Positions 15,250 through 63,270 of a DNA stretch of 64,000 nucleotides are shown piece after piece. The stretch is from IMG/VR virus record IMGVR_UViG_3300028558_000791, positions 62,001 to 126,000 of that record, one strand, 5' to 3'. The position numbers and the translations under genes are program-made. The notes under the pieces were generated by a model. The model was not told where the DNA came from, made no database searches, and saw only the letters and a list, made by a program, of their open reading frames with translations. Position 1 is the stretch's first letter, and every line of letters begins with the position of its first letter.

Positions 15250-15269
15250 TGAACACAAGGATAAGTAAC

Positions 15270-29841: not shown

Positions 29842-29842
29842 C

Positions 29843-36288: not shown

Positions 36289-36305
36289 TCTCGTATTTAG
36301 CTGAG

Positions 36306-37553: not shown

Positions 37554-37572
37554 TTTAATAAATACGGCGGGC

Positions 37573-37600
37573 TTGACTGCCCGCTTACAATGATTAGGTT
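37573..37600 (+). promoter_or_regulatory. Sigma70-like promoter
   Basis: TTGACT-N16-TAGGTT. Confidence 0.6.
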
Positions 37601-37607
37601 TTGCAGT

Positions 37608-38111: not shown

Positions 38112-38683
38112 GACCAGTTCAAAAAATTACCATCAACAAAGATTCTGATTTCTGGAAGTCAATTCAAAAATCTGCCGAATTAGATGCAGAAGAAGCTGCC
38201 ACAAAAGCCGCAGCCCGAGCCAGAAAAGAAACATTAGAACGAGCTGAGAAGCTCGCTGCTGAAAAGCAAGCCTACTTGGATTCCATTCGTCACTATGACA
38301 AATTAGAATTCAAGAATGAAAAGATACGAGAACAAATTCAAGAGTGTATTGCTCTTCGTGCTGATTACAGTAAATTATCAAGTGATCAATGGCAAAAACA
38401 AGAAGAGCTTCGTAAAAAATTACAGGCTCAGTGCTCTCATGATATGGTCATTGAAATGAGAACTTCCTATCGTGATGATTACGATAGTTGGCATGATGGT
38501 CATTACGAACGTAAGTGTATAGAATGTTTCTTAGTAGAGCAAAGCGATAGTCTGCCTGGTCAGCGTGGTTATGATTTCTCTAGAGATAAGTACAAAAAAT
38601 TAGAGAAGTCGCAAGTTGTTTTATTGCGTAAAACGGTTGATGGTAAAGAATACGAATTGGAGTTTGAAGATCTCAAATGGTAG
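38108..38683 (+). CDS. Hypothetical protein (coiled coil plus CxH...CxxC)
   Basis: 191-aa coupled ORF. Confidence 0.75.
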   Translation: MRPVQKITINKDSDFWKSIQKSAELDAEEAATKAAARARKETLERAEKLAAEKQAYLDSIRHYDKLEFKNEKIREQIQECIALRADYSKLSSDQWQKQEELRKKLQAQCSHDMVIEMRTSYRDDYDSWHDGHYERKCIECFLVEQSDSLPGQRGYDFSRDKYKKLEKSQVVLLRKTVDGKEYELEFEDLKW

Positions 38684-39054
38684 GATTAGTGGTCAAGAAT
38701 ACTCAAAGCCGCGGGCTAGGTGTTTTTGCCACTGAACGTATCGAGAAGGGCGACCTAATCGAATGTTGTAGGGTTATCATTGTACCCCGCGCAGAAATCA
38801 TGATTGGTAACACTAGTTCTGTCATGAGGCATTATGTTGTTGATTGGGATAACAAACTAGCTATCCCAACCGGCTATGGCTGCTATTACAATCATTCTTA
38901 TCAGCCCAATGCCATTCATCACAAGCACCTCGATTTGAACGAGATTCATTTTCATGCCTTGGTAGATATCCTACCGTTTGAAGAAATCACGTTTAATTAT
39001 GGCGGGTATCCGACCTGTAATGAACCTCTATGGTTCGAAGTCAAGCAGTCATGA
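38677..39054 (+). CDS. SET-domain lysine methyltransferase
   Basis: RGLGVFATERIEKG, YYNHSYQPNA, ALVDILPFEEITFNYG. Confidence 0.88.
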   Translation: MVGLVVKNTQSRGLGVFATERIEKGDLIECCRVIIVPRAEIMIGNTSSVMRHYVVDWDNKLAIPTGYGCYYNHSYQPNAIHHKHLDLNEIHFHALVDILPFEEITFNYGGYPTCNEPLWFEVKQS

Positions 39055-39704
39055 AACAACCCTTCATTATCAAAGAAGTACGACCTCGCATTTTTCTATT
39101 TGAGTTCAGTAATCATTACGATATGTGTATGCATTTCTTGCGCTATCAAGAATTCTACGAATCACCTTCTCCTAAGTTTAGGGGTAAGAGTTTTCGTATT
39201 CTAGATTTCATGAAGTGGTACACTTTCAAATATGGAAACGGTTCTTTCACTTATCCAAATGATTGGAATGGGTTTAATATACCTGGTGATACTATTAACA
39301 AAGTTTGTCAATTGGGCCTGCCCGATCAAAATCCCTATGATAAAGAGATGTTGTTGGCCTGGAACAAATGCAATAGTAAAGCTAATGGAGAGCCATTTTA
39401 CATTATCGGGGTAGTCCGTGGTAACAAAGCCTTGAACCATGAGATTGCTCACGGGTTATTCTACCTAAATAAGGAATACAAAAAAGAAACTGTGAGGCTG
39501 GTTAAAGAACTGCCGACCTCTATTAGAAAAACCATCAATGATGGTTTAAAGAAGCTTGGATATACTCCAAAGGTCTACGTTGACGAAACGCAAGCCTATA
39601 TGTCTACTGGTTTGTCAGAGGCTTTTGGTAAGGTAGATCAATGGAAAGGTGAGCGTGCCGATTTTGAGGCGTGCTTTAAAAAGTTTTCAAGGAAAGTAAA
39701 ATGA
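39051..39704 (+). CDS. Hypothetical protein with HExxH (possible zincin)
   Basis: LNHEIAHGLFY ... DETQAY. Confidence 0.65.
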   Translation: MKQPFIIKEVRPRIFLFEFSNHYDMCMHFLRYQEFYESPSPKFRGKSFRILDFMKWYTFKYGNGSFTYPNDWNGFNIPGDTINKVCQLGLPDQNPYDKEMLLAWNKCNSKANGEPFYIIGVVRGNKALNHEIAHGLFYLNKEYKKETVRLVKELPTSIRKTINDGLKKLGYTPKVYVDETQAYMSTGLSEAFGKVDQWKGERADFEACFKKFSRKVK

Positions 39705-40594
39705 GTAACGATAGCCTTGGCGATAGGATGAAGTCCTATGAAGATGTTTTTAGACTTCATTTGCCGATTAGAATGCCGGTCATCATGCGTATTGACGGCA
39801 AAGCGTTTCATTCTTATGTAAAAGGTAAGGGTGTAGATGGAAAAGAAGTCGATAAGCCTTTTGATAAGGGACTGTTTGATTGTATGAACGATACTGCCAT
39901 TGCACTTTGTAAAGAAGTGCAAGGTTGTCGTTTGGCTTATGTCCAATCTGACGAGATTTCTCTTCTGTTAACTAACTACAGCACAGTAGATACTCAATCC
40001 TGGTTTGATAACAACCTTCTAAAAATGGTTAGCATCTCTGCATCTGTAGCTTCTGTTACTTTTACCGAGAACTCTTACAAGATTTGGGGAATAGATTACT
40101 CCAACGAGGATCCTTTCTATCTCACCAAGCCAGCTCATTTTGATAGTCGAGCTTTTGTAATGCCAAAGGAAGATGTAACAAACTATTTCTTGTGGCGTCA
40201 GCAGGATGCTACTCGAAACTCTGTGCAGATGCTGGCTCGTTCCCTGTATTCCCACAAGGAATTGGAAAACAAGAACAACTCAGAGCTTCAAGAGATGTGT
40301 TTCCAAAAAGGTGCCAACTGGAATGACGTTCCTACTGCTCAGAAACGTGGTCGTTGTATTGTTAAAAAGGTTACTCAACATACCGCCTTCAACCCTAAGA
40401 CAAAAGAATATGTCAAATCTGAGCGTAGTGCCTGGGTAGTTGATGACGAAATCCCTATTTTCTCTGTGGATAGAGAGTACGTTGATCGATTTGTTTACCC
40501 TGAAAGAGAGAATGATTATGTCCCAGGAAAAGGTAGAGTGTATAACGTCTCTTATGGACATCCCGGTATTAGGACTTTAGGTGAAGGCGACTAA
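39701..40594 (+). CDS. thg1: Thg1-like 3'-5' nucleotidyltransferase (tRNA-His guanylyltransferase family)
   Basis: GDRMKSYE, MRIDGKAFH, YVQSDEISL, FDSRAF, YFLWRQQDATRNS. Confidence 0.93.
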   Translation: MSNDSLGDRMKSYEDVFRLHLPIRMPVIMRIDGKAFHSYVKGKGVDGKEVDKPFDKGLFDCMNDTAIALCKEVQGCRLAYVQSDEISLLLTNYSTVDTQSWFDNNLLKMVSISASVASVTFTENSYKIWGIDYSNEDPFYLTKPAHFDSRAFVMPKEDVTNYFLWRQQDATRNSVQMLARSLYSHKELENKNNSELQEMCFQKGANWNDVPTAQKRGRCIVKKVTQHTAFNPKTKEYVKSERSAWVVDDEIPIFSVDREYVDRFVYPERENDYVPGKGRVYNVSYGHPGIRTLGEGD

Positions 40595-40922
40595 GGCTCA
40601 AGTCCGAAAAGAGCGCAAACGGAAACGCCATCAGCAGAAAAAGATTAACACCAAACTCAAAAAGAGATTATTTGGTCATCTGTTCATGGCGCCTTGCTGC
40701 TACTGTAGGCAAGTCTTTTTGTTTACAGAGCTAACGGTGGAACATATCACTCCACTTTGTCTAGGCGGGACAAACGAGCCAAGCAATATTGCATTGGCTT
40801 GCGGGCCGTGCAATCATGAGCGTGGGCGTGAAGCCTGGACTCATAAGCAACAAATCAATAAGAAAACCTATGAACAATATCACACGCAGCATCGAAGCAA
40901 AAATTGGGAAAGGGCTGTATAA
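40581..40922 (+). CDS. HNH endonuclease
   Basis: CCYC...TVEHITP...NIALACGPCN. Confidence 0.8.
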   Translation: MKATKAQVRKERKRKRHQQKKINTKLKKRLFGHLFMAPCCYCRQVFLFTELTVEHITPLCLGGTNEPSNIALACGPCNHERGREAWTHKQQINKKTYEQYHTQHRSKNWERAV

Positions 40923-41937
40923 AAAGTCTGACCATCCCCTATCTACTGTTAAAGATATGGTGTTCGAATATTTCGATGACCTTGCTCGCATCGAAATTGA
41001 TAATCCCTATGTTCCTATTGAATACAACTTCGATAGACTACGTGTCCCTACTGATCATCCATCTAGGCGTATGACCGATACCTTCTACAAGGATGAGAAG
41101 ACTTGCCTTCGTACCCATATGACTTGCTATCTTTATCCACTGGGTAAGTCAGAGACTGGGCATAGCAAGCTCAAGTACATTACCTGTGGCGATGTGTATA
41201 GAAAAGATGCTATTGATTCATCTCACTATCCCGTCTTTCATCAAATGGATGCCTTCTGTATGGTACCGGATGGAGTGGATGTCAAGAAAGATTTAAGAGA
41301 TCGTCTTAGTGGTTTGGTAAAACACCTATTCGGAAACAATGTTGATCATCAATTCTTAGAAGATTCTGATTATGAGGAAGTATATTTCCCTTTCACGGTT
41401 GATTCTCTAGAGGTTAGTGTATCTATACCAGATGAAAATGGCAAAATGAGACAGCTAGAGATTCTAGGGGCGGGAACTGTACACCCAGATATCATGAGCG
41501 ATCTTGGTTTACCGGGCAAAAAGGCTTGGGCATTCGGTGTTGGTTTGGAAAGACTAGCTATGGTGATGTTTGGTATCCCTGATATCAGGCTATTCTGGAG
41601 TACCGATAAGAGATTCGTTGACCAATTCACTCAAGGTAAGGTAACGAAGTTCAAGCCGTTCTCGAAATACGAGTCCTGCTATAAGGACATTTCATTTTAT
41701 ACAAGCCTTAAGTTCTCGTACAATGACCTTTGCTCTATTGCTAGGGATGAGGACGAGTATAACCTGATCGAATCTATTATATTGATTGACGAGTTCCAAA
41801 GCAAAGGGAGAACGTCTCAGTGTTATAGAATTACATACCGATCCATGGACGGTACTTTAAGAAATTCTGATGTGAATAAGATTCAGAAGTCTATTCGCGA
41901 TAGAATCACCAAAGAACTAGAGGTAGAAGTCAGATGA
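40870..41937 (+). CDS. pheS: Phenylalanyl-tRNA synthetase, monomeric mitochondrial type (alpha catalytic core fused to FDX anticodon-binding domain)
   Basis: NFDRLRVPTDHPSR, LRTHMT, GDVYRKDAIDSSHYPVFHQMD, YFPFT, WAFGVGLERLAM, PDIRLFWS, then KDISF...SQCYRITYRSMDGTL. Confidence 0.92.
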   Translation: MNNITRSIEAKIGKGLYKKSDHPLSTVKDMVFEYFDDLARIEIDNPYVPIEYNFDRLRVPTDHPSRRMTDTFYKDEKTCLRTHMTCYLYPLGKSETGHSKLKYITCGDVYRKDAIDSSHYPVFHQMDAFCMVPDGVDVKKDLRDRLSGLVKHLFGNNVDHQFLEDSDYEEVYFPFTVDSLEVSVSIPDENGKMRQLEILGAGTVHPDIMSDLGLPGKKAWAFGVGLERLAMVMFGIPDIRLFWSTDKRFVDQFTQGKVTKFKPFSKYESCYKDISFYTSLKFSYNDLCSIARDEDEYNLIESIILIDEFQSKGRTSQCYRITYRSMDGTLRNSDVNKIQKSIRDRITKELEVEVR

Positions 41938-43742: not shown

Positions 43743-45628
<1,886 letters not shown>

Positions 45629-45629
<1 letters not shown>

Positions 45630-45973: not shown

Positions 45974-46296
45974 ATTATATTAAGTTTCCAATCTATACAA
46001 AGTTTATGTTTTACCACCCATATGGTGGTGAAGGTAAGTCATATAACTTCTCTTCTAAGCTAGATAAGATTGGTTCTGAGTGGGATGTTTCGATTAAGAA
46101 CGGAACTGGTATTGAGATTGTCTCTGATATCGATCCGGTAACACTTGACCACCCTAAATATGGAATCATCTCACTTGTCAAGATTAAAGCTGATGTATCT
46201 ACTGATTATCATACTATAATCAAAGAATTTTGGGTTCCGGTTGATTGCATTATTGAGACATCAAAGCATGAGAGACAAATACCTGTGGTTCACTGA
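45970..46296 (+). CDS. Hypothetical protein
   Basis: Coupled ORF. Confidence 0.6.
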   Translation: MNYIKFPIYTKFMFYHPYGGEGKSYNFSSKLDKIGSEWDVSIKNGTGIEIVSDIDPVTLDHPKYGIISLVKIKADVSTDYHTIIKEFWVPVDCIIETSKHERQIPVVH

Positions 46297-47074
46297 TACC
46301 CATTTGGATAAAGTTGGCCCCTTCAGGATGTTTAAATTCATTCGACATCTCCTTAAAGAGAATCCGAAAGGCATCTTTCTTACCGGAGACATATCAAATG
46401 GTTGGGCGACGGCCTGGCATTTGCGCTTGATTGCCACTTTTGTTAAGTGTCCAATCTACTTTGTGCTCGGAAATCATGATTATCACTTCTCTTCCGTTGA
46501 TAAAACTCATAAAAAGATAAGAGAACTATGTAAAGAGTTCCCCAATCTTATATGGATGACAGATGCGGGCGTAGTTCATCTCAGTGATGAGGTCTGTCTT
46601 ATCGGCACAGAGGGGTGGTATGACGCTGATAATGGCAAACCAAAGTATCTTCAGTTCACTTTAGACTGGATGTTGACGGAAGATTTCCGAAAACTTCCTG
46701 ATATGGAAGCTAGAATTGAGCATTGGCGACAGATAGCAGACCAAAGCGCTCACGATATTGTGGATAAATTAGAAAAAGCTATTGAACAAGGATACAAAAC
46801 CATCTATATCTTGACACACTTCCCTCCTTGGAGGGAGGCGACTCGTGATGTTGGCACCTTTATGGAACAGTTTTGGCTCCCATACAATGTTAATTTGCGT
46901 TTAGGTAAAGCAATTAAGCATGCTATGCAGGAACATAAGAAGAAACATGTTACTGTATTGGCTGGTCATACTCATACAGACTGCTGGATTCATGTAACTC
47001 GCAACGTAGATTGCAAAGTTAGTAAGGCGAAATACTATGGAGAACTCCGAAACGAAGAGCACATCTTTATCTGA
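46268..47074 (+). CDS. Calcineurin-like metallophosphoesterase, copy 1
   Basis: TDTHL, TGDIS, LGNHDY, THFPP, AGHTH. Confidence 0.88.
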   Translation: MRDKYLWFTDTHLDKVGPFRMFKFIRHLLKENPKGIFLTGDISNGWATAWHLRLIATFVKCPIYFVLGNHDYHFSSVDKTHKKIRELCKEFPNLIWMTDAGVVHLSDEVCLIGTEGWYDADNGKPKYLQFTLDWMLTEDFRKLPDMEARIEHWRQIADQSAHDIVDKLEKAIEQGYKTIYILTHFPPWREATRDVGTFMEQFWLPYNVNLRLGKAIKHAMQEHKKKHVTVLAGHTHTDCWIHVTRNVDCKVSKAKYYGELRNEEHIFI

Positions 47075-48075: not shown

Positions 48076-48311
48076 TGTTAAAGATAATTACCAACCACAA
48101 TAAGCAGGATATCACATACACCTATACTCTGGGGCAAACATTTCCAGATATTCAGGGTAAGTTATTGCAATTAGAGCTTAGTGGTAAAGAATTAGCTAGA
48201 CTCGTCCAGGAGAAAGAGATTCCTATCTGCGCTATCGATAACTCTCAGCTTATTTGGCACGGTAAGAGTGCCGGTTCGGTTCTAAAAATGTTACGAGAGA
48301 TTCTATGCTAG
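48072..48311 (+). CDS. Hypothetical protein
   Basis: Coupled ORF. Confidence 0.6.
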   Translation: MMLKIITNHNKQDITYTYTLGQTFPDIQGKLLQLELSGKELARLVQEKEIPICAIDNSQLIWHGKSAGSVLKMLREILC

Positions 48312-48613
48312 AAACAATTATTACACTGTTGGCAATCTATGGGCTTGCTTTTCTGGTTAAGGAAAGTGCCGGACCATTTGATATTATGGATAAGACCCGT
48401 TCATTCCTTATGAGGAATAAGTATACAGGAGTCTTCTTCTTCAAATTGTTAGATTGTTATTTTTGTGTAGGTTGCCATTGTGGGTGGATTGTTTATCTAT
48501 TGAGCCACAAATCTTATAGTTGGCAATTTTTTACATTGTGGACGCTTGCGGGCGGCGTCATCAGCCTTATGATGAGTAGTGCGCTAGCGAGGCTGCACTC
48601 TTCGGTTAGCTAA
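48305..48613 (+). CDS. Small membrane protein (DUF1360-like)
   Basis: Three TM segments, LLDCYFC motif. Confidence 0.65.
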   Translation: MLETIITLLAIYGLAFLVKESAGPFDIMDKTRSFLMRNKYTGVFFFKLLDCYFCVGCHCGWIVYLLSHKSYSWQFFTLWTLAGGVISLMMSSALARLHSSVS

Positions 48614-48950: not shown

Positions 48951-50447
48951 ATGAGTCTGCCTGTCATTAAGGACCAGTCCGTCATTGATAACATCAAAGT
49001 TGTGGAATCCGTCAAGCGATGGACACTTAACTTTACCGACATTGTCAATAACAACAATAAGTTTTACAACCTGGAAGTTGTTAAGTCATCTGACGACAAA
49101 TTCTATCTGTACACCGTTTACGGTCGAGTTGGTGCCGGTGGCGCCAAAGAGTACAGGTCAGCATCTTCTCTCAACGAAGCAGAGAAGGAAGCCGAAGGCA
49201 TCATCAAGTCCAAGAACAAGAAGGGCTATGTTGAAGTCAAGCTTGCTAAAGCTGACATCGGTTCCGAGCTTGGTAAGGCCAAGGTCGATACCTCTGTGAC
49301 CCTTGAGTCTTTGAAGAAGGCTGGCGTGAAGGTTACAGAAGAGCCTCAAGCTGCCAGCAAACTGCATGTTGAAGTGCAAGACCTTGTTCGCACTTGGTTC
49401 GGCGTTACTCAAGAGTTCCTTGAGTTGAACCTTGACACCAAGAAGTGCCCACTCGGCCAGTTGTCTCTCGATCAAATCGACAAGGCCAAGCAGATTCTTG
49501 AAGAGGCTCGTAATATCGTTCATGCTAAGAAGCCTGACAAGGATGAGTTGAACAAGTTGACGAGTTCCTATTACTCCAACATTCCTCACGTTCTTGGTTC
49601 TCGAATCAATGCGGATTTGCTTCGTTTTGATGATGACCCCAAGATTGACAAAGCGTTTGATATTCTTGACGTCTTTGCTGACGCCAAGAACGTTCAGGCC
49701 GTTATTTCCAAGAAGAGCGCGGTTGATTCGCAATATGCGACTCTGAATGCTGGTTTGGAATACGTTGATCCAAAGGATCCGACCTTCAAGTGGCTTGAGG
49801 CAATGGTTCTTGAAACCCGCGCCAGCAACCACACCGGCTTGGGCAAGCTGAAGATTCATAAGGTCTTCAAGCTGGCTCGTAACAATGAAGACAAATACTT
49901 CATGGAGACAGCCGAAAAGATTGCTAAGGAATGCGGTAAGTTTGTTCCTTCTCCGGTCTATTCTAATTTGGTCAAGAGGCGCCCTGATCTCTCCAAGGAG
50001 ATGCAGGAGCTTTACCAGAGGGCTAACATTCTCCCTGGTTGGCACGGTACTCGCCGTGCAAACATGATTGGTATCACTACCAAGGGACTTTTGATTCGTC
50101 CTTCTGGAGTTATCCATGCGGGTTCTATGTATGGTGACGGTATTTACTGGGCCGTTCATAGTACTAAGTCCATCAATTACTGTGACGTCCGTGGTTCTCA
50201 CTGGGCTCAGGGTAATAACAAGACCGCGTATCTCTTCTTAGGAGACGTGGCTTTTGGTAACCAGGAGATGGCTGGTGGTTCTCGTATGTATACCAAGAAG
50301 AACATCGCGCCTAACCATTCTGTGTGGGCAAAGTCCGGTGGTAACTCTGGATTGTACAATGACGAACTGATTACCTACACCGCTTCTGGTGCGGGTCAGC
50401 AGCACGCCCTTCGCTACATTATCGAATTTGAGACGCAAGCCAAATGA
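48951..50447 (+). CDS. PARP-family ADP-ribosyltransferase (WGR + helical regulatory + catalytic domains)
   Basis: NKFYNLEV...YGRVG; PLGQLSLDQI...YYSNIPH; WHGTRRAN...GSMYGDGIYWA...KSINYC...YNDELITY (H-Y-E). Confidence 0.93.
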   Translation: MSLPVIKDQSVIDNIKVVESVKRWTLNFTDIVNNNNKFYNLEVVKSSDDKFYLYTVYGRVGAGGAKEYRSASSLNEAEKEAEGIIKSKNKKGYVEVKLAKADIGSELGKAKVDTSVTLESLKKAGVKVTEEPQAASKLHVEVQDLVRTWFGVTQEFLELNLDTKKCPLGQLSLDQIDKAKQILEEARNIVHAKKPDKDELNKLTSSYYSNIPHVLGSRINADLLRFDDDPKIDKAFDILDVFADAKNVQAVISKKSAVDSQYATLNAGLEYVDPKDPTFKWLEAMVLETRASNHTGLGKLKIHKVFKLARNNEDKYFMETAEKIAKECGKFVPSPVYSNLVKRRPDLSKEMQELYQRANILPGWHGTRRANMIGITTKGLLIRPSGVIHAGSMYGDGIYWAVHSTKSINYCDVRGSHWAQGNNKTAYLFLGDVAFGNQEMAGGSRMYTKKNIAPNHSVWAKSGGNSGLYNDELITYTASGAGQQHALRYIIEFETQAK

Positions 50448-50908
50448 ACATTTTCGTTTTAGACACTGACGTAAAACGGGCCGCTCAGGCGCATGTTGAC
50501 AAGCATTGTGTCAAAATGGTTCTTGAAACTACGCAACTACTTAATAACGCGCTTATTACTGGGTCCTCAAATTATGACCCAGTATATAAGCAGACGCATA
50601 AAAATCATCCTTGTAGTATTTGGGCTGCGGAATCTATTGATAATTTCAATTGGCTAACCAATCTTGGCTTGGCCCTTTGTGAGGAGTATACGTTTCGCTA
50701 CTCAAAGATTCATAAGTGTCAGCCAATTATTCAACGGTTCTCATCACTAGCTAACGATTTACCTAAAATTGGTTTGACACCATTTCAACTTTGTATGCCA
50801 GACCAATATAAAGTTGATGATGCTGTTGAATCTTATCGGAACTACTATCGTGGCGATAAAGCCTACATTGCAAAATGGTCTAAACGTAATCAACCAAGCT
50901 GGTGGTAA
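50444..50908 (+). CDS. Pyrimidine-dimer DNA glycosylase-like protein
   Basis: MNIFVLD...DKHCVKMVLE..QLL...THKNHPCSIW; ATGA overlap with PARP. Confidence 0.8.
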   Translation: MNIFVLDTDVKRAAQAHVDKHCVKMVLETTQLLNNALITGSSNYDPVYKQTHKNHPCSIWAAESIDNFNWLTNLGLALCEEYTFRYSKIHKCQPIIQRFSSLANDLPKIGLTPFQLCMPDQYKVDDAVESYRNYYRGDKAYIAKWSKRNQPSWW

Positions 50909-50909
50909 A

Positions 50910-51065
50910 ATGTTTTATGTTGTATATGAAGTGAACGGTTTTGATGGTGTTCAAAAGGCAGGCCCATATTCGCAGGCTGATGTTCAATATCAGCGGGATG
51001 ATATCGCAGGCTTCGAAGGCGTGGTGAACGTCAAGGTTGTTCCTGCTGAGGAAATGGACGAATGA
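50910..51065 (+). CDS. Small hypothetical protein
   Basis: 51-aa ORF bridging the operon. Confidence 0.55.
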   Translation: MFYVVYEVNGFDGVQKAGPYSQADVQYQRDDIAGFEGVVNVKVVPAEEMDE

Positions 51066-52330
51066 AAATCGGATTGCTAACCTTTCCGCGACTGACCAAC
51101 ACTTTTTCAGTTGGTCGGCCGACACTGCTGGCCCAAAAGCTTGAGCCATCTGTGTTGTACCTCTCCCCTTCTCAAGGGGAGTTGGTTTTTCTAGAGGACA
51201 ACAAACCTCGCGCTGATATTGATCTCTATCTTTGCTCAGTGTATACTCGTGGTTACAATGAGTTTGTTCGTTTCTCCCAAGAGGTTGGACGAGATAAAAT
51301 CATTGCTGGCGGCTATCATCCCACGGCTGAACCGTCCGATACCTTCAAACACGCTCATAAAGTGGTTGTGGGTTACTGCGACAACATCGATCAAATCTTG
51401 GATGAGAAACCCGGAATCCATCGTGGTTCCTTTGGGTTCACTCGTATGCGCCGGGACTTGATTGATATGACTACTATGAAGCAAGTCTACCCAGACATCT
51501 ATCCTCATGATATCTCTGGGTCTATGGTTTCCTCTGTTGGGTGTCCATATGATTGTGACTTCTGTTCCACTCCACAAATGTCTGGGCGTAAGATGCGCAC
51601 TGCCACTTTGGATTACGTAGCAGAAGAGATTGATGATCTTGTTAAGCGTGGAGCTACTACCGTTTTCATTCGAGATGAAAGTTTTGCCACTCATCCGCTA
51701 GTGAAAGAAGTCGCCCCACTTTTCAAAGACAAGTTCAAAGTTCTTTACTCATTTGGAACCAGCGGGGTATATGCTAAGCATCCAGAGATTCTCGCGACTC
51801 TCAAAGATAGCGGATGGCACTCTCTCAACATCGGCCTGGAAGATGTTGGTGTCAAATACAAGAAGAACATCAACATCAAGCTTGGTGTAGAGAACATTCA
51901 TCGTAATGGTTTGCAACACGTGATGTCATTCATTGTCAATGACGATGGCAAGACTGAAGATGAAGCCCGCGCTAATTACAAAGCTTTGTATGAAGCGTTT
52001 GTGGACTTGAAACCATTACAAGTATGTGCTAACTTTCTAATGCCTTTCCCCGGCACTAAGCTATGGGAAGGTTACAAGAGCCGTGTAACTACTGCGGATT
52101 TCGATCGTTTCGATTCCAAAACCCCAGTCTTTACTCATGGCGCTTTTGGTGAGTGGCACAAACGAATGTTAGTGTCAGTTCAGCTTAAGTATTACTTGAG
52201 CGAAATCTACAACAAGCAGGTGCGTCCATTTGATTGTGGCGATCTACTTCATCTTAGGATGAATGAGTTGGCCAAAGAATTCAATTTGGATGATGTGTCT
52301 TGGGATCAATTGTTGGAGCTGAAGGTATGA
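51062..52330 (+). CDS. Radical SAM protein with N-terminal B12-binding-like domain
   Basis: IIAGGYHPT; SSVGCPYDCDFC (CxxxCxxC); FIRDESF; PFPGTKLW. Confidence 0.88.
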   Translation: MKIGLLTFPRLTNTFSVGRPTLLAQKLEPSVLYLSPSQGELVFLEDNKPRADIDLYLCSVYTRGYNEFVRFSQEVGRDKIIAGGYHPTAEPSDTFKHAHKVVVGYCDNIDQILDEKPGIHRGSFGFTRMRRDLIDMTTMKQVYPDIYPHDISGSMVSSVGCPYDCDFCSTPQMSGRKMRTATLDYVAEEIDDLVKRGATTVFIRDESFATHPLVKEVAPLFKDKFKVLYSFGTSGVYAKHPEILATLKDSGWHSLNIGLEDVGVKYKKNINIKLGVENIHRNGLQHVMSFIVNDDGKTEDEARANYKALYEAFVDLKPLQVCANFLMPFPGTKLWEGYKSRVTTADFDRFDSKTPVFTHGAFGEWHKRMLVSVQLKYYLSEIYNKQVRPFDCGDLLHLRMNELAKEFNLDDVSWDQLLELKV

Positions 52331-52806
52331 TTGAGATTGTAACTGGAGATTTGTTCGAAGCAACAGAGAAATATCTTTGTCATCAGTGCAACTGCGTAAC
52401 CAATAAGGCCGCGCATCTAGCCGCTGATATGTTCGAGAAGTTCCCTCACTCCGACATCTATACTCCACGTACTGAGCCAGACCAGCCTGGTCATATTATT
52501 ATTCGTGGTGATGGCAAGGCCGAACGTTATGTGGTTGCAATGCTTGGTCAATATTACCCAGGTCGCTCCAAGTACCCCAAATCAACTTTAGACGGCCTCC
52601 CGATTCGCGAGAAATACTTTTACCGCTGCCTGCTCCGCCTGGCTCAAGTGCCCGACCTGGAAAGTGTAGCATTCCCCTGGCGCGTTGGCTGCGGCGCTGC
52701 TGGTGGGGACTGGGAACATTACCTTGGAACCATCACCAATTTCGCTCAATACGTTGGGGAGAAGGGTGTTAAAGTTCGCATTTACCGCCGTGATGGAGAC
52801 GAATAA
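52327..52806 (+). CDS. Macrodomain ADP-ribose hydrolase (TARG1/DarG/Poa1-like)
   Basis: IVTGDLF, HQCNC, MLGQYYPG, AFPWRVGCGAAGGDWE. Confidence 0.88.
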   Translation: MIEIVTGDLFEATEKYLCHQCNCVTNKAAHLAADMFEKFPHSDIYTPRTEPDQPGHIIIRGDGKAERYVVAMLGQYYPGRSKYPKSTLDGLPIREKYFYRCLLRLAQVPDLESVAFPWRVGCGAAGGDWEHYLGTITNFAQYVGEKGVKVRIYRRDGDE

Positions 52807-53006
52807 TGTCTGATGATAAGAAGTCCTATTTGGACTATGATTTTGCAACGTTTAAAGAACAGATGGAAGAAGCTACTGCTATTCTGAAGAAGATGAACGA
52901 AGCTGCTAACTATATGCGTTGGCAGTATGAAATGGATGAAACCATGAAAGAGTTTGAGAAAGAAGTTCAGGATGCAAGTGGATGGCTGTCAAGCTGGTGC
53001 GGGTGA
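52806..53006 (+). CDS. Hypothetical protein
   Basis: 66-aa helical ORF. Confidence 0.55.
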   Translation: MSDDKKSYLDYDFATFKEQMEEATAILKKMNEAANYMRWQYEMDETMKEFEKEVQDASGWLSSWCG

Positions 53007-53010
53007 AACA

Positions 53011-53442
53011 ATGGCAATCAAATTCTATAAAGTAAAAGAGCCTTACGGCTTCTGTAGCAACTATTACAAAAGCCGATTCTTCGTCTTTGGCCGCTGGTGG
53101 AACTGGAGTGAAGCTCCGTACCAGGCAGCCAAGACTAGCGTTCAGTCTGAGATTGATGCAATTCATCAAGCTACCAAGGCCAATGATACTCGTCTTTTAG
53201 GGCAGAAAGTAACCATGCGTCCCGATTGGGATGAGATGAAGTACTCTGTTATGAAAGAAGTTTGCATGGCCAAGTTTCTTCAGCATCCAGATTTGCGAAA
53301 GCAACTTATCGCTTCTGGCGATGAAGAGTTGATTGAAGACTCTCCAGTTGACTATTACTGGGGTTGTGGGGCCGATGGTTCCGGTAAGAACATGCTCGGT
53401 AAATTGCTCATGGAACTTCGAGAGGAGTTGAAAGGTGAGTAA
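53011..53442 (+). CDS. NADAR (YbiA/DUF1768) hydrolase
   Basis: YGFCSNYY, EAPYQAAK, RPDWD, AKFLQHPDLR, LIEDSP.DYYWG, GKNMLGKLLMELR. Confidence 0.93.
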   Translation: MAIKFYKVKEPYGFCSNYYKSRFFVFGRWWNWSEAPYQAAKTSVQSEIDAIHQATKANDTRLLGQKVTMRPDWDEMKYSVMKEVCMAKFLQHPDLRKQLIASGDEELIEDSPVDYYWGCGADGSGKNMLGKLLMELREELKGE

Positions 53443-54655: not shown

Positions 54656-55162
54656 ATGTCTAATTTGGAAGATACAGTTCGTTCGGTTGTGCAAGATTTC
54701 ATCAGTCGTGAAGTTCTCTTTACGGCGTTGGATGTCAGTAATGCAGTCAAAACTGCTGCGCCTCATGTCAGGCACCGTGAAGTGAGAGATGTGGTTCGTG
54801 CCATGTTCTCTTCGGATATTGAGACCCAGGGTTGGGCTCGTACTCCTATTTCCGTTACCTTGGGTGATGGTACTACGGCAGAAGCTTTGCTGTACCATCC
54901 TCTAACTGACTCCTGGGATTTGGATAACAAGTACAGCGTTCAACAGCGCGTGACCACTTCTGCTCGTCCAGTTTCTGTTGCACAGGCTGCTGCCAGTGTT
55001 ACTTCAACGGTTACTCTCCCAGCTTCTTTGCCAGTTCCTGTGGTTGCGGCTCCATTACCGACTGTAACGCCGGCCGTGGTTCCTACCGCTCCATTGCCAA
55101 CTGCTCGTAGCCTTTGGGACCAGATGTTCCAAGTTCAACCATCTTTGTTCCCTCGTAAGTAA
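54656..55162 (+). CDS. Hypothetical protein with Ala/Pro/Val/Thr-rich linker
   Basis: 168-aa ORF, AAGGAG SD. Confidence 0.75.
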   Translation: MSNLEDTVRSVVQDFISREVLFTALDVSNAVKTAAPHVRHREVRDVVRAMFSSDIETQGWARTPISVTLGDGTTAEALLYHPLTDSWDLDNKYSVQQRVTTSARPVSVAQAAASVTSTVTLPASLPVPVVAAPLPTVTPAVVPTAPLPTARSLWDQMFQVQPSLFPRK

Positions 55163-55178: not shown

Positions 55179-55979
55179 ATGCAACGAAACATAATTCTGT
55201 ATCGCGGTTCGGATTTTGAAAAAGAGGAATTAGATTCAGCGCTTCAAGTATTTGAATGCACTGATCGAAGGCCGGAAATCCAAGCTGGCGATCTTGTTAT
55301 CGGAAGATATTCACTTTGGCCGTTCTATGTGGATCAAGCTAAAGACATTGAGTATGTTGGCGCCAAGCTGATTAACAATTATCAGCAGTACCGTTACATT
55401 GCCGATTTGCAGAATTATGTAATGGACCTTCGAGAACTGACTCCTCGGACCTGGAGAGACATCACGGATCTGCCAGATAAGGGTCAGTTCATCTTGAAGG
55501 GTGAGACTAACTCTCGTAAATCCAATTGGAAACGAGATATGTTCGCACCCGACAAGAAGACAGCAATTGAGATTTATGCTCGCCTGATGGATGATAGTCT
55601 AATCGGGCAGCAAAACATTTATATTCGCCGGTACGAACCAATGGTTACGTACATGGAAGGTATCAATGGAATTCCAATTACTAAAGAGTTTAGATTCTTT
55701 GTCGCCTATGGACAGATTCTAAGTGGAGGTTATTACTGGCAAAACTATGTAGATGAGTTGCCAGAAGTCCCCAACCCAGATGAAGTTCCTCGTGAATTCT
55801 TGAATGAAGTTATTGTGCGAGTGGGCAATCAATCCAATTTCTATACCATTGACGTGGGACAATCCATCTCTGGCAAATGGTTTGTAGTTGAACTGAATGA
55901 AGGACAGCAATCAGGGTTATCCTGTAACGATCCTTTTACTATGTACAAAAATCTAGACAAGGCCATTAGAAGCCAATGA
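55179..55979 (+). CDS. ATP-grasp protein (R2K/DUF4343-like), copy 2
   Basis: FILKGETNSRK, EFRFFV, TIDVG...WFVVELNEGQQSGL. Confidence 0.75.
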   Translation: MQRNIILYRGSDFEKEELDSALQVFECTDRRPEIQAGDLVIGRYSLWPFYVDQAKDIEYVGAKLINNYQQYRYIADLQNYVMDLRELTPRTWRDITDLPDKGQFILKGETNSRKSNWKRDMFAPDKKTAIEIYARLMDDSLIGQQNIYIRRYEPMVTYMEGINGIPITKEFRFFVAYGQILSGGYYWQNYVDELPEVPNPDEVPREFLNEVIVRVGNQSNFYTIDVGQSISGKWFVVELNEGQQSGLSCNDPFTMYKNLDKAIRSQ

Positions 55980-56602
55980 AAGAGTTCAACTCTATTCAAG
56001 AGCTGTGGGATTACTGCGCGTACTGTCCCATTTGTACACGGAATTGTCGAGAGGTAATTGTCTCAGTAGGGCCAGATAAAGTTTTTATTCTAGTGTCCTC
56101 TGAAAAGAAAGACAACAATCTATTTATGCAATGTACCTACAAGAATAAGCGCTCTATCTATACGGTTGAATATAATCTCAACTGTACTGATAATACATTT
56201 CGTGTAGAAGTACCTAACGTAGTAGAATTGCCGCTTGGTGAAACTGCCAAGCCCGAAAAGATTAAAGAAGCCTATTTCTTCTTCTTTGTTGAAGGTATGT
56301 GTAATCAGTGCAATTGCGCTACAGCACATAGTTTAGACTTGGAGCTAGATATAGTGGATAGACGGATTTCTAACATCGGACTAGAGCGTGAGAGTTTTTA
56401 TCTTTTTGAAGGTAAAGACAAATTTCACGTGACTCCCATTCATGACCGAAACGTCATGTTGGTGAGCCGCTGCTATGTCGACGATGAGCAACTTGGCTTC
56501 TCCGAAAGTGATAAAACAATCGAGTTGCCTTTAGTAAAACTTGATCTTTCTGATCAGGAAAAAGTCACTAATAAAATTAAGACTCTAATTCTATTTAGTT
56601 GA
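55976..56602 (+). CDS. Hypothetical protein with C-terminal KIKTLILFS
   Basis: CPIC...CNQC; helical tail. Confidence 0.75.
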   Translation: MKEFNSIQELWDYCAYCPICTRNCREVIVSVGPDKVFILVSSEKKDNNLFMQCTYKNKRSIYTVEYNLNCTDNTFRVEVPNVVELPLGETAKPEKIKEAYFFFFVEGMCNQCNCATAHSLDLELDIVDRRISNIGLERESFYLFEGKDKFHVTPIHDRNVMLVSRCYVDDEQLGFSESDKTIELPLVKLDLSDQEKVTNKIKTLILFS

Positions 56603-56611
56603 GGGTATCCC

Positions 56612-56815
56612 ATGTCCACTTTCAGAGAAGCCAGCCAAGTCCGTCTTGTATTGAAAATGAAACTATCCATGTATGCATGGTATAGCTCCAGTACTGTCGT
56701 CGCAGTTGACGATGGCTTTGGCGTAATTATTGGCGTCAAACATATGGACAATGGCATCCGCAAACTGGTTCCGCCGGTTGTAGATGGCGTATCAGTGAAA
56801 GCGGAAGTAGAATGA
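56612..56815 (+). CDS. Hypothetical protein
   Basis: 67-aa ORF. Confidence 0.6.
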   Translation: MSTFREASQVRLVLKMKLSMYAWYSSSTVVAVDDGFGVIIGVKHMDNGIRKLVPPVVDGVSVKAEVE

Positions 56816-57525
56816 AAATCAAACGAATCTCAGATCAAACTGCTAGGAATTTCAAAATGCGACTTTGTCATGTGTCAGATACTCACGGTAGATTCCCTCG
56901 TCTCTATGGACGATACGATGCCGTTATCCACACTGGCGATCTGTTTCCTAACAGCCATCATGTGTTTTCTGGGAACAAGAATCAAGAGATGGCATTCCAA
57001 CTCAAGTGGCTTCGTGAGAGTGCGGAAGAGATCAAGTCTTGGCTTCAGGGCCATCCCTTGCTCTATGTTCCTGGCAATCATGACTTCTTGCACTCCAGTC
57101 TAATGGAGTTCGAGTTGCGCCAGATTGGTTTGGAAGCATTCGATCTGACGGATAAGACGCTCAACTTTCGAGGGGTAAACTTCTATGGTTTCCCTTACGT
57201 ACCAGAAATCAATGGTATGTGGAACTATGAGCGCCGGCTCCCGGAGATGCAGAAGGAAGTCGACAAGATGGTTGAAATTGTCAACAAAGAATATGTCGAC
57301 GTTTTGGCTTGCCATGCTCCACCCTATAAAATGCTTGACCTCACGATGGGTAATGAGGTTGTAGGTTGTCAGGTAATGTCTACGGCTCTAGATTACAAAA
57401 TCAGCAGAGATATGATGCCTTCTTATTTCTTGTGCGGTCACATCCATGAAGCAAATGGAATGTCTGTGCGTAATGGGATGATGGTTAGCAACGCTGCTAC
57501 CACGCGTCATATCATCGAGGTCTAA
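56812..57525 (+). CDS. Calcineurin-like metallophosphoesterase, copy 2
   Basis: VSDTHG, HTGDL, PGNHD, CHAPP, CGHIHE. Confidence 0.88.
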   Translation: MKIKRISDQTARNFKMRLCHVSDTHGRFPRLYGRYDAVIHTGDLFPNSHHVFSGNKNQEMAFQLKWLRESAEEIKSWLQGHPLLYVPGNHDFLHSSLMEFELRQIGLEAFDLTDKTLNFRGVNFYGFPYVPEINGMWNYERRLPEMQKEVDKMVEIVNKEYVDVLACHAPPYKMLDLTMGNEVVGCQVMSTALDYKISRDMMPSYFLCGHIHEANGMSVRNGMMVSNAATTRHIIEV

Positions 57526-57526
57526 T

Positions 57527-57997
57527 ATGAAAGTCAAACCGAAAGAAGTATTAGTGAATCTCCCAGTGGCTCTATTGTTCGATGAGCCCTGGGAGATTGC
57601 CTCCTTTGCCGCTAACATCAATGCTATCCTTCATGGTAAGGTTAGATTGAAGGCTGAGGATTTGGGCGTACTCGGCGGAAGGTATGTAGGATTGTTTTAC
57701 CTACAGCGTAACGGAGAATCCCAACAGATTCATGATGAGTTCATGCGACTCATTGAAGAAGAGGAAGTTAGCGAGCACGACCATTCTTTTGTCCCTGGCC
57801 CCACTTCTGAGCCTGAGGAAGAATGGATTGATGATGCTCATCCAAGAGATGAAGATAATTATGCTCATGGTCTTTGCAAAGATTGTGACGAATACTCTAT
57901 GCTTCATATCAAAGGAGAGGATCATTGTCGCTGCGGAGGCGAAATGGTCAATGGCGTATGTAAGCTCTTAGGAAAGATTAGAAAGACCAATGCGTAA
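57527..57997 (+). CDS. Hypothetical protein
   Basis: 156-aa ORF, C-terminal Cys cluster. Confidence 0.65.
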   Translation: MKVKPKEVLVNLPVALLFDEPWEIASFAANINAILHGKVRLKAEDLGVLGGRYVGLFYLQRNGESQQIHDEFMRLIEEEEVSEHDHSFVPGPTSEPEEEWIDDAHPRDEDNYAHGLCKDCDEYSMLHIKGEDHCRCGGEMVNGVCKLLGKIRKTNA

Positions 57998-62307: not shown

Positions 62308-63270
62308 ATGAAAATCCTGTCAGGCATACAGCCGTCAGGAACAATTCACATCGGAAACTATTTTGGAATGATCAAGCCACTGCTTGGTTTCCAAGACAAG
62401 GGAGAAGTGTTTTGTTTCTTGGCGGATTACCATTCAATGACCTCATTGTTTGATGCAAAAGAACGTAAAGCAAATTCTATCGAAGCGGCCACTACTCTTT
62501 TAGCTTGTGGTCTAGACCCCCTGAAGACAACCTTCTTCAAACAGTCAGACGTACCACAAGTAACTGAACTGGCCTGGATGCTGTCCACCGTAACTCCTAT
62601 GGGATTACTAGAACGCTGTCATAGCTACAAAGATAAGACATCCAAAGGTATCTCGGCTAATCATGGGCTATTTGCTTATCCCGTATTGATGGCAGCAGAT
62701 ATTCTCATCTACCAATCTAATCTTGTACCAGTTGGTAAAGATCAGATGCAGCACCTAGAAGTTGCCCGCGACATTGCTGTCAAGTTCAATACTGCTTATG
62801 GAGATGTATTTACCCTGCCAGAACCATTCATTCAACAGCAAGTTGCTATTGTTCCGGGAACTGATGGCGGTAAGATGTCCAAAAGCCACGGCAATACACT
62901 TGAAGTGTTTGGAGATGAGAAGCTTCTCAAAAAGAAGATAATGTCCATCACAATGGATAGTAGGTCTCCAACTGAGCCTAAACCTGACGCTAGCCAGAAT
63001 ACAGCTATTCAGTTGCTGAAATTGGTAGCTCCCGAAGATATTGCTTCTGATACAGAGACAAAGCTTAGGGAAGGTCAGCTTGGCTATGGTACGCTCAAGG
63101 GAATCCTGTTTGAGCATTGTACTAACTACTTTGCCAAACCACGTGAGTTGTACAACGATTTGAAGAATAACCAAGACTATGTTGAGGCTATTCTCGAAGA
63201 TGGGGCTGCTCGTGCAGCTTGTACAGCTCAATATACGATGAAGAACGTAAGGAAGGCTGTTGGTCTATGA
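62308..63270 (+). CDS. trpS: Tryptophanyl-tRNA synthetase
   Basis: SGIQPSG.IHIGNY (HIGH), YPVLMAADIL, PVGKDQMQHLE, KMSKS. Confidence 0.96.
   Translation: MKILSGIQPSGTIHIGNYFGMIKPLLGFQDKGEVFCFLADYHSMTSLFDAKERKANSIEAATTLLACGLDPLKTTFFKQSDVPQVTELAWMLSTVTPMGLLERCHSYKDKTSKGISANHGLFAYPVLMAADILIYQSNLVPVGKDQMQHLEVARDIAVKFNTAYGDVFTLPEPFIQQQVAIVPGTDGGKMSKSHGNTLEVFGDEKLLKKKIMSITMDSRSPTEPKPDASQNTAIQLLKLVAPEDIASDTETKLREGQLGYGTLKGILFEHCTNYFAKPRELYNDLKNNQDYVEAILEDGAARAACTAQYTMKNVRKAVGL

Follow-up and report, generated by a model that had tools for sequence, protein, structure and literature searches.

The 64,000-nucleotide stretch analysed here (the window) covers bases 62001-126000 of one 480,838-base IMG/VR virus record, IMGVR_UViG_3300028558_000791, which is rated complete. 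At 48951-50447 it encodes a 498-residue poly(ADP-ribose) polymerase (PARP). The gene is an intact PARP of the prokaryotic and phage type, with a WGR domain, a helical autoinhibitory domain (HD) and an ADP-ribosyltransferase (ART) domain. Judged from its sequence, the product is probably activated by nicks or breaks in DNA and is probably a polymerase. The stable partners of this PARP across lineages are a divergent paralogue of the NAD+-dependent DNA ligase LigA and a winged-helix-like protein. We see about even chances that the enzyme would mark damaged or replicating phage DNA together with the LigA-type ligase and a phosphoesterase, would be fed by NAD+ synthesis of the phage and would be reset by the hydrolases PARG and ARH. 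The genes discussed below all lie on the plus strand, are tightly spaced and are each open in the standard bacterial code. The PARP and the genes that accompany it most regularly are the following.

48951-50447, plus strand: PARP, 498 residues, with WGR (25-97), helical regulatory (136-260) and ART (279-498) domains; Pfam, phmmer against the Protein Data Bank (PDB), AlphaFold2, Foldseek, trees
43755-45629, plus strand: NAD+-dependent DNA ligase of divergent LigA type, with KxDG motif, OB fold, four-Cys zinc finger, HhH and BRCT; Pfam, synteny
46241-47074, plus strand: calcineurin-like metallophosphoesterase, after LigA; Pfam, NCBIfam TIGR03729, synteny
48305-48613, plus strand: 102-residue protein shortly upstream of the PARP, with only viral neighbours in the ESM Atlas; tblastn
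54656-55162, plus strand: 168-residue protein with an N-terminal winged-helix-like domain (about 1-95) and a tail rich in Pro, Val and Ala; synteny

Domain structure and catalytic residues of the PARP

The Pfam matches to the WGR domain (residues 25-97, 1.4e-17), to the regulatory domain PARP_reg (residues 136-260, 3.1e-19) and to the PARP catalytic domain (residues 279-462, 1.9e-19) are all three well above their cut-offs. In a phmmer search against solved structures, human PARP1 and PARP2 chains are found with E-values down to 5.5e-28. The alignment pairs WHG, GSMYG-GIYWA and STKS-INY of the phage protein with WHGS, GYMFGKGIYFA and SKSANY of PARP1. Residues His365, Met393, Tyr399, Lys406, Ser407 and Tyr410 correspond in it to His862, Met890, Tyr896, Lys903, Ser904 and Tyr907 of PARP1. 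The H-Y-E triad is formed by His365, Tyr399 and Glu472, which align to His862, Tyr896 and Glu988. Across an alignment of 34 PARP sequences with 26-94% identity, His365, Tyr399, Tyr410, Lys406/Ser407 and Glu472 are invariant or nearly so. The AlphaFold2 model, built from 34 homologues, has a mean predicted local distance difference test score (pLDDT) of 86. It superposes on DNA-bound WGR-HD-ART structures of PARP1 and PARP2 with Foldseek E-values of about 1e-27 and template-modelling (TM) scores of 0.6-0.73. Relative to PARP1 and most bacterial PARPs, the protein contains an insert of about 40 residues (about 313-357), which follows the first ART strand, precedes the WHG strand and is modelled confidently as three helices. 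Both the domains and the catalytic residues are directly established. A first-pass annotation, made from the letters alone, had proposed a 498-residue WGR, helical and ART protein with an H-Y-E triad in a phage, which is borne out by Pfam, phmmer, AlphaFold2 and Foldseek. It had also noted apparent equivalents of PARP1 Met890 and Lys903, and phmmer does align Met393 and Lys406 there. Most of the PARP gene is overlapped on the minus strand by an antisense open reading frame (ORF) of 347 residues with a GTG start (49158-50201), which probably arises from the composition of the coding strand.

The last 40-60 residues of the PARP fall outside the Pfam and phmmer alignments, and the C-terminal region was aligned separately. 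The sample contained ten prokaryotic and phage PARPs besides that of the window, from Kofleriaceae, Armatimonadota, Chloroflexota, Nitrospinota, an archaeal metagenome-assembled genome (MAG), viral contigs and Xanthomonas phage XacN1. It also contained eukaryote-type sequences, recognised by their zf-PARP, PADR1 or BRCT domains. In all of the prokaryotic and phage PARPs sampled, a short loop precedes x-N-[D/N]-E, whereas the eukaryote-type PARPs have an extra acceptor loop of about 27 residues and Y-[N/D]-E. Glu472 is nearly invariant in the 34-sequence alignment. The column of PARP1 Tyr986 holds Asn470 in the phage protein, and the tyrosine of the phage YNDE motif stands in a variable column (Y, V, I or Q even in close relatives). 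The first-pass annotation had read this tyrosine as shifted by one residue, YNDE against YNE. We rejected it as a displaced Tyr986, because Asn470 fills that column and the tyrosine column varies; the motif is the prokaryotic consensus, with no insertion or deletion. By sequence, the short loop and the N-D-E motif neither prove nor exclude polymer synthesis. Bacterial PARPs of the same WGR-HD-ART type, from Herpetosiphon aurantiacus and Clostridioides difficile, are DNA-dependent and make poly(ADP-ribose) (PAR) (PMC4245714, PMC5966428).

Phylogeny and conserved partners

A careful maximum-likelihood tree places the window PARP inside an 18-row prokaryotic and phage group of insert-bearing sequences (support 94/82). 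This group is made up of the present phage clade, three Kofleriaceae, other phage contigs and one further clade. The eukaryotic PARP1/2-type clade (100/100) branches separately, in a polytomy that includes other prokaryotic groups. In a quick tree, the eukaryotic PARPs had grouped loosely with the phage clade, at a Shimodaira-Hasegawa-like approximate likelihood-ratio test (SH-aLRT) value of 92; the careful tree did not keep this group, and the claim of eukaryote affinity was therefore dropped. The nearest cellular relatives are the Kofleriaceae at 45-47% identity, against about 21-24% to human PARP1/2 in fold alignments. The WGR-PARP_reg-PARP_cat architecture is standard in bacteria and has been known there since at least 2014 (PMC4245714; also PMC5966428, PMC8120803). 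The first-pass label of a eukaryote-style PARP is contradicted by this bacterial architecture, by the separate branch and by the identities, and the features of the eukaryotic PARP1-3 clade, the acceptor loop and the Tyr two positions ahead of the catalytic Glu, are missing here as in the ten other prokaryotic and phage PARPs. The label is true only insofar as bacterial PARPs generally share the PARP2/3 architecture.

More than 500 proteins match the phage PARP. The 120 matches listed are 71-94% identical, and contigs of 440-496 kb carry some of them, which makes the PARP a conserved gene across a clade of giant phages. The phages of this clade are roughly 0.45-0.5 Mb in size; the window phage is from rhizosphere metagenomes, and two rhizosphere runs carry DNA near-identical to the record. 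Against GenBank phages, megablast with the 4.5-kb region gives no match and tblastn gives distant PARPs only, with at most 28% identity near full length and up to 37% over C-terminal fragments. Cultured phages with annotated PARPs are Xanthomonas XacN1 (BBA65562.1), Klebsiella 05F01, Stenotrophomonas CM1/RAS14 and Cellulophaga phi4:1 and phi17:2. The PARP of XacN1 is an example cited in a jumbo-phage survey (PMC7824862), PARP-like ARTs rank among the commonest viral ARTs (PMC9503650), and "NAD-jumbo phages" have been described with PARP, NAD-dependent ligase and NAD+ synthesis (PMC11662467). The distribution of PARPs is patchy, and their horizontal transfer is frequent (PMC4245714). Among 301 Myxococcota genomes sampled, the insert-type subfamily occurs in one. 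No experimental test of any phage PARP was found in the literature searched. In other phages, the PARP adjoins an SNF2 helicase or lies near a DNA polymerase. One such lineage, with a PARP 41% identical by tblastn, has a 683-residue SNF2-family helicase directly downstream (loci L034, 6001-9562, and L035, 1014-4575), an adjacency that recalls PAR-dependent SNF2 remodellers such as ALC1.

The comparison with cellular genomes identifies the partners of the PARP. The PARP homologues of three Kofleriaceae (Myxococcota) MAGs are on chromosomal contigs of high GC content and have ordinary bacterial genes around them, for an extracytoplasmic function (ECF)-type sigma factor, a glutathione-synthetase-like protein and SPFH proteins. 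The PARP gene stands head-to-head with a LigA gene whose product is 47% identical to the phage ligase. In its first 80 residues, the protein encoded directly after the PARP shares 45% identity with the phage protein of 54656-55162. Each of these genomes has two LigA proteins, a canonical one (271-280 bits to the LigA adenylation-domain model) and a divergent one beside the PARP (155-160 bits). Because each genome also has a normal LigA, the PARP-linked copy is a second, specialised paralogue. The phage ligase (151 bits to the same model, 47% identity) is by sequence of this divergent, PARP-linked type. It is the only DNA ligase in the phage genome, in which an ATP-dependent ligase was sought and none was found. 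The 168-residue protein belongs to no Pfam family; the resemblance of its Atlas model to winged-helix regulators is weak (TM at most 0.53) and is a lead only. Neither a macrodomain nor a NADAR neighbours the Kofleriaceae PARP. Six PARP loci of other types are present in the Myxococcota sample (five in four other genomes, and one second copy in the subfamily-bearing genome); none has a ligase neighbour and one adjoins a PARG. At a myxobacterial locus (L040, 166-2883), the genes of a PARP from another subfamily and of a microbial PARG, 41% identical to the PARG of the phage, stand head-to-head. Other Myxococcota thus have PARP next to PARG, whereas the partner of the insert-type PARP is a ligase.

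Within the phage clade, ten relatives were compared, with their genes located by tblastn around the PARP loci. Nine are clade members with 70-90% PARP identity (L003/4, L005-L011 and L018) and the tenth, L036, has 50%. The LigA-type ligase lies upstream of the PARP in every relative whose contig extends there, and the metallophosphoesterase follows it in most. The 102-residue protein is found shortly upstream of the PARP in all ten, and the 168-residue protein downstream in every relative reaching it, L005 included. The order LigA, 102-residue protein, PARP and winged-helix-like protein is kept in all relatives with enough flank, down to 50% PARP identity. The macrodomain gene is downstream of the PARP in eight of nine relatives. 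The NADAR gene is intact there in seven of nine; it is a fragment in L007, and it is absent along with the macrodomain in L005. A Pyr_excise-like gene lies beside the PARP in four of ten relatives and elsewhere in one, and a radical SAM gene of the window type is present in one of ten (L018, a 6.4-kb contig). In the closest flanked relative (L006, 90% identity) the order runs PARP, small ORF, macrodomain, 66-residue ORF and NADAR, and the glycosylase-like and radical SAM genes are for this reason regarded as insertions in a variable slot. Gene order and its conservation are direct observations; the order of 48951-53442 as a whole is not kept among the relatives, and only the macrodomain and NADAR genes recur often. 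Of the partners that the first-pass annotation gave the PARP, the glycosylase and the radical SAM protein are variable, and it missed the LigA paralogue and the winged-helix-like protein. The whole region is collinear across the clade, with the genes at 55976-57997 kept as well. Such synteny is weak evidence of function because it is inherited.

Several side observations concern these loci. The contig of L018 (JBFWUT010000077.1, 6.4 kb), filed under a "Candidatus Berkiella" MAG, carries the 102-residue gene, the PARP (72%), the Pyr_excise-like gene (67%) and the radical SAM gene (83%); almost certainly, phage DNA has been binned here with a bacterium. In L005, the sole relative with neither macrodomain nor NADAR, the stretch that follows the PARP is broken up by LAGLIDADG homing-endonuclease genes (13610-16095). 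In L036, an IS200/IS605 element with a Y1 transposase and a TnpB/Cas12f-like protein lies just after the winged-helix-like gene (9473-11019). Both here (55179-55979) and in three relatives, an R2K-clade ATP-grasp gene (PF14243, formerly DUF4343) follows the PARP, in the window at a distance of 4.7 kb. A DUF4343 gene also lies 1.8 kb upstream of the XacN1 PARP, which is of an unrelated clade (L033, 3377-4192), and the proximity may be a coincidence or a recurrent association. A second calcineurin-like metallophosphoesterase (56812-57525), 6 kb downstream of the PARP, is kept in most relatives.

Hydrolases, NAD+ supply and the genes downstream

The phage genome is rich in genes for NAD+ and ADP-ribose, whose presence is directly established. 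Those of the hydrolases and of NAD+ supply are listed here with the translation-related genes of the window.

Record 37908-38753 (outside the window, 73 kb upstream of the PARP): bacterial-type PARG, 281 residues; PF10021, GGG..QEE
756-1676, plus strand: ARH-family ADP-ribosylglycohydrolase, copy 1
32731-33723, plus strand: ARH-family ADP-ribosylglycohydrolase, copy 2
27353-28390, plus strand: fusion of a cytidylyltransferase-like domain and Nudix; Pfam
28438-29841, plus strand: nicotinamide phosphoribosyltransferase; Pfam
29768-30742, plus strand: NAD synthase; Pfam
5377-7470, 15210-16229, 39701-40594, 40789-41937 and 62308-63270: translation-related genes

PARG matches PF10021 (PARG_cat_microb) at 1.5e-43 and the Thermomonospora curvata PARG structure 3sig at 6e-53. 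Its translation contains GGGFLSGALAQEE, which fits the GGG-X6-8-QEE signature. Homologues with 59-89% identity lie on contigs of 490849 and 480146 bases, equal in size to PARP-bearing contigs, and further ones on contigs of 478738 and 101991 bases, equal in size to macrodomain-bearing contigs. PARG is common in the phage clade, not universal. It is present in all three Kofleriaceae genomes that have the PARP versus one of 14 control genomes, and this co-occurrence of PARP and PARG is the best indirect argument for polymer. From its sequence, the phage PARG is likely to be the PAR eraser for the PARP product. The two ARH proteins named by the first-pass annotation are indeed present in the window. 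The cluster around PARG (record 34206-41416) also contains a nucleoside deoxyribosyltransferase-Nudix fusion, a Ro60/TROVE-vWA protein, a dCMP/cytidine deaminase, a GIY-YIG nuclease and a cytidylyltransferase; the phage Ro60 homologue may be of interest for RNA quality control.

Six genes follow the PARP up to position 53442.

50444-50908, plus strand: Pyr_excise-family (DenV-like) protein, 154 residues; Pfam PF03013 (26.5 bits), phrog_624, ESM Atlas
50910-51065, plus strand: ORF of 51 residues; tblastn matches in the corresponding region of four relatives
51062-52330, plus strand: radical SAM protein with B12-binding domain, 422 residues; Pfam Radical_SAM (3e-14), B12-binding-type NCBIfam, PDB
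52327-52806, plus strand: macrodomain, 159 residues, SCO6735/BT1257 subclass of the ALC1-like class, to which TARG1 and DarG also belong; AlphaFold2, Foldseek, profile against the PDB
52806-53006, plus strand: ORF of 66 residues between macrodomain and NADAR; found only in the closest relative
53011-53442, plus strand: NADAR, 143 residues, YbiA subfamily; Pfam, TIGR02464, E. coli YbiA 2b3w

The families named for these neighbours in the first-pass annotation are all present on the plus strand, at or near the positions it gave. Its account of the junctions stood in part. The ATGA overlap of the PARP stop with the Pyr_excise start and the tight packing hold, the starts of the macrodomain and NADAR genes had to be moved, and the ORFs 50910-51065 and 52806-53006 had been overlooked. 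The 51-residue ORF begins two bases past the Pyr_excise gene, and its stop overlaps the radical SAM start in ATGA. Because the junction of the radical SAM stop and the macrodomain start also reads ATGA, the macrodomain start is placed at 52327 and not at 52300. The macrodomain stop and the start of the 66-residue ORF form TAATG. The NADAR start is most likely the ATG at 53011, which gives 143 residues and matches the relatives, and not the TTG at 52954. As sequence goes, the packing of 48951-53442 is compatible with one transcript. Scans for promoter consensus (31 found versus 25.6 expected from shuffling) and terminator consensus (18 found versus 11.2 expected) stay near the shuffled background and are uninformative on transcription units. 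The Pyr_excise match is marginal (26.5 bits for a cut-off of 23) and the assignment is backed by phrog_624 (5e-56) and by Pyr_excise-bearing neighbours in the ESM Atlas. This 154-residue protein has no match among solved structures at E-values up to 1, and because of this its function is kept as Pyr_excise-like.

The macrodomain protein does not match the Pfam Macro model, and fold and profile searches were required. Its AlphaFold2 model, from 23 homologues, has a pLDDT of 77. Nearly all of the top Foldseek matches are macrodomains or macrodomain-scaffold designs, including TARG1 (2lgr) and DarG (5m3i, 5m31). The family profile finds BT1257 (3e-5), DarG (0.003) and SCO6735 (0.014) among solved structures. 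Gln75 and Asn22 are invariant in the 23 members of the family alignment; they align to the GQ and CN motifs of SCO6735/BT1257 and correspond to Gln85 and Asn27 of SCO6735. Gln75 takes the column of the TARG1 Lys84 and DarG Lys80, and the nearby Lys85 is not conserved. In SCO6735, Gln85 replaces the catalytic lysine of TARG1 and DarG and is essential (PMC9411070). The first-pass description of a TARG1/DarG-like macrodomain is correct for class and fold and incorrect for the catalytic type, which is that of SCO6735. The phage protein shares with SCO6735/BT1257 the macro fold, the Gln at the lysine position and the Asn27 equivalent; it differs by a very low identity and by a Gln at the position of SCO6735 Val25. 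SCO6735 removes the thymidine-linked ADP-ribose that DarT places on DNA, and it rescues cells from this toxin (PMC9411070), and macrodomains of its type also remove protein-linked mono-ADP-ribose (PMC9411070, PMC5087735).

The NADAR is assigned with PF08719 (118 bits, 6e-34, cut-off 35.1) and TIGR02464 (117.8 bits, cut-off 73.7) and is closest to E. coli YbiA (2b3w, 1.9e-22). The last-strand residue of NADARs is Glu in the YbiA type, Asp in the DarT1-linked type and His in the T4 type (PMC11125620). In the sequence alignment, a Glu of the phage protein pairs with a YbiA Glu in the region of the C-terminal strand, and may be this residue. Like AdfN of T4, Bas32 and Bas60, the phage NADAR is a stand-alone NADAR fold of about 140 residues without the N-terminal extension of DarG1. 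Unlike T4-type AdfN, it is closest to YbiA, and by this provisional alignment it has Glu, not His, at the aligned position. All NADARs tested so far act on ADP-ribose linked to guanine (and cytosine) in nucleic acids and leave thymine adducts in place, and phage NADARs of three unrelated groups are necessary and/or sufficient against DarTG1 defence (PMC11825919, PMC11125620). Because the pair combines one enzyme of a thymine-adduct type and one of a guanine-adduct type, the macrodomain and NADAR are most likely de-ADP-ribosylases of DNA bases, acting on thymine- and guanine-linked adducts, that would shield the phage against DarT2- and DarT1-like toxins of the host. We rank such a shield above dedicated erasers of the PARP product. 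A search of the phage genome for the DarT family gave no match, and none was found in the controls either, so that it is uninformative. If the pair does neutralise modification of both the DarT2 and DarT1 types, it would be a two-pronged counter-defence that extends the anti-DarT NADARs to a macrodomain partner.

Proposed role and alternatives

The steps of the proposed role would be as follows. WGR would bind nicks or breaks in replicating or attacked phage DNA, and this binding would release the helical autoinhibitory domain. The ART domain would then consume NAD+, drawn from the salvage genes of the phage itself, and ADP-ribosylate the enzyme and nearby partners, probably with polymer. This mark would coordinate the cleaning and sealing of ends by the upstream LigA-type ligase and metallophosphoesterase; the latter (46241-47074) is a possible end-processing enzyme by inferred role. 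The winged-helix-like protein with its disordered tail is a candidate acceptor or adaptor. PARG and the two ARH enzymes would take the mark off. It is homology that points to DNA activation, to polymer, to the acceptors and to coupling with the ligase.

The ligase, the PARP and the winged-helix-like protein may be a functional module or a single block transferred in either direction. A stronger proposal takes the trio as an undescribed prokaryotic module for break repair, in which PAR at a nick would recruit or activate the BRCT-bearing NAD+-dependent ligase and the phage would supply NAD+ synthesis, writer and PARG/ARH erasers, with separate shields against DNA ADP-ribosylation. We hold this to be rather unlikely at present. 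If true, it would be a phage and bacterial counterpart of the eukaryotic PARP1-XRCC1-ligase III pathway in giant soil phages and a few myxobacteria, and the ligase link would couple break signalling by ADP-ribose to nick sealing outside eukaryotes. The analogy, a functional one only, consists of a break-sensing PARP whose gene is linked to those of a BRCT-bearing ligase and of a phosphoesterase that may process ends. It differs from PARP1-XRCC1-ligase III in that the ligase is NAD+-dependent LigA, not ATP-dependent, and no XRCC1 homologue is present; PAR-dependent recruitment is purely our inference.

Several points weigh against the proposed role of the PARP in marking phage DNA, or against parts of it. 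The ligase, as the only one of the genome, may simply serve replication and stand 3 kb from the PARP by chance. The Kofleriaceae are the only independent comparison and may reflect one block transfer, while collinearity inside a single phage clade is inherited and says little about function. Asn at the Tyr986 position and the lack of the eukaryotic acceptor loop allow for either poly- or mono-ADP-ribosylation. PARG was not found in five fragmentary relatives (four 28-58% complete and one 83%; one contig of 359 kb). In one study, the YbiA of E. coli K-12 failed to protect cells against DarT1 (PMC11125620), and the closeness of the macrodomain and NADAR genes to the PARP in most relatives leaves room for a direct link to the PARP product, e.g. 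ADP-ribosylated DNA.

The first-pass annotation had combined the PARP, glycosylase, radical SAM protein, macrodomain and NADAR into a self-contained operon, a write and erase circuit in which the macrodomain and NADAR would be dedicated erasers of ADP-ribose made at breaks. We consider this unlikely. Along 48951-53442, stop and start codons overlap or lie at most 4 bases apart, which agrees with it, but such packing is not specific to the proposed operon, because the whole region is collinear in the clade and all of its genes are tight on one strand. The recurrence of the macrodomain (8/9) and NADAR (7/9), which includes the relative at 50% PARP identity, also agrees with it; against this stand the radical SAM gene in 1/10 and the adjacent glycosylase-like gene in 4/10, L005, which keeps the PARP with neither hydrolase nearby, and the Kofleriaceae, where neither is a neighbour. 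A true PARG exists elsewhere in the phage genome, 73 kb upstream. An SCO6735-type macrodomain could act on protein-linked mono-ADP-ribose as well (PMC9411070, PMC5087735), whereas tested NADARs act on base-linked nucleic-acid adducts only (PMC11125620, PMC11825919). An offensive effector, which would ADP-ribosylate host proteins or drain host NAD+ for takeover, is an improbable role for the PARP. The Alt and Mod enzymes of T4 modify RNA polymerase and translation factors. Jumbo-phage surveys propose that phage PARPs act on host proteins like other phage ARTs (PMC7824862), the phage re-synthesises NAD+, and the translation factors encoded in the window are potential ART targets or replacements. 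The WGR and autoinhibitory helical domains are nevertheless kept and conserved, which implies that the activity is gated by nucleic acid. Furthermore, the PARP lies among DNA-metabolism genes, beside a ligase, in phage and bacteria, and in other phages beside an SNF2 helicase or near a DNA polymerase; free-living bacteria carry this subfamily on their chromosomes, and for them host takeover makes no sense.

Slightly less probable again is that the PARP modifies DNA itself, at terminal phosphates of breaks or genome ends or at bases, and caps or marks phage DNA, with the macrodomain and NADAR reversing the adducts. Human PARP1-3 can ADP-ribosylate terminal phosphates of DNA in vitro. DNA N1-adenosine PARylation appears in the reference list of PMC11125620, tested members of both hydrolase families act on DNA adducts (PMC9411070, PMC11125620), and both genes are near the PARP in most relatives. 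Against this alternative, the tested enzymes are base-specific (guanine/cytosine for NADARs, thymine for SCO6735) with no known action on phosphate-linked ADP-ribose, and the Kofleriaceae module has neither hydrolase. That the PARP is a recent passenger or a decaying gene with no role in the phage is hardly credible. The patchy distribution and frequent horizontal transfer of PARPs (PMC4245714), with this subfamily in 1 of 301 Myxococcota, would allow it, but hundreds of full-length, frame-intact homologues in the clade, at 70-94% identity, have invariant catalytic residues and the PARP has a conserved genome position, so that it is effectively refuted.

Among known systems, the phage PARP resembles those of H. 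aurantiacus and C. difficile CD160 in its WGR-PARP_reg-PARP_cat architecture with an H-Y-E triad and no zinc fingers or BRCT. Its WGR motif reads Y-G-R, as in most bacterial PARPs (PMC5966428), and it keeps their conserved regulatory-domain leucines (Leu183, Leu239); a bacterial-type PARG in the same genome is a further likeness to bacterial PARP systems. It differs in belonging to a separate subfamily with the helical insert before the WHG strand, in being encoded by a phage, and in its link to a LigA paralogue and a winged-helix-like protein, unlike bacterial PARPs next to PARG. With human PARP2/PARP3 and the WGR-HD-ART part of PARP1 it shares the overall fold and the equivalents of His862, Gly863, Met890, Tyr896, Lys903, Ser904, Tyr907 and Glu988. 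It is unlike them in its low identity (about 21-24%), the missing acceptor loop of about 27 residues, Asn for Tyr986, the extra helical insert and the lack of phylogenetic affinity. It has the short acceptor loop and N-[D/N]-E motif of cultured-phage PARPs, homologues that surveys note as "PARPs/PARTs of jumbo phages" (PMC7824862, PMC9503650, PMC11662467, PMC4245714). The PARP of XacN1 is in a different tree clade, with no ligase, macrodomain or NADAR annotated within 6 kb.

PARPs in bacteria and large phages, phage macrodomains, NADARs and phage NAD+ systems are already published, and the present one is not a new class of system. No description of an insert-type PARP subfamily linked to a LigA paralogue and a winged-helix-like protein was found in the literature searched; this subfamily and its link may be new, on the basis of one cross-lineage comparison. 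One genome offers a compact set of PARP, PARG, two ARHs, an SCO6735-type macrodomain, a YbiA-type NADAR, NAD+ salvage and a dedicated NAD+-dependent ligase. For experiments the phage PARP is a good candidate, since the literature searched contains no test of any phage PARP and the genome holds, by gene content, a complete PAR cycle. To a specialist the finding would be no surprise.

The gene content of the window is that of a "huge phage", and a UvrD helicase is also encoded in it. Its translation set is unusually rich, with full-length EF-G and EF-Ts, a Thg1-like tRNA-His guanylyltransferase, a PheRS-alpha-like protein and a class-I Trp/Tyr-tRNA synthetase. IMG/VR tags the 480,838-base record as a "provirus"; the collection has its PARG on a 498,445-base contig, from which about 17.6 kb were apparently trimmed as host-like.

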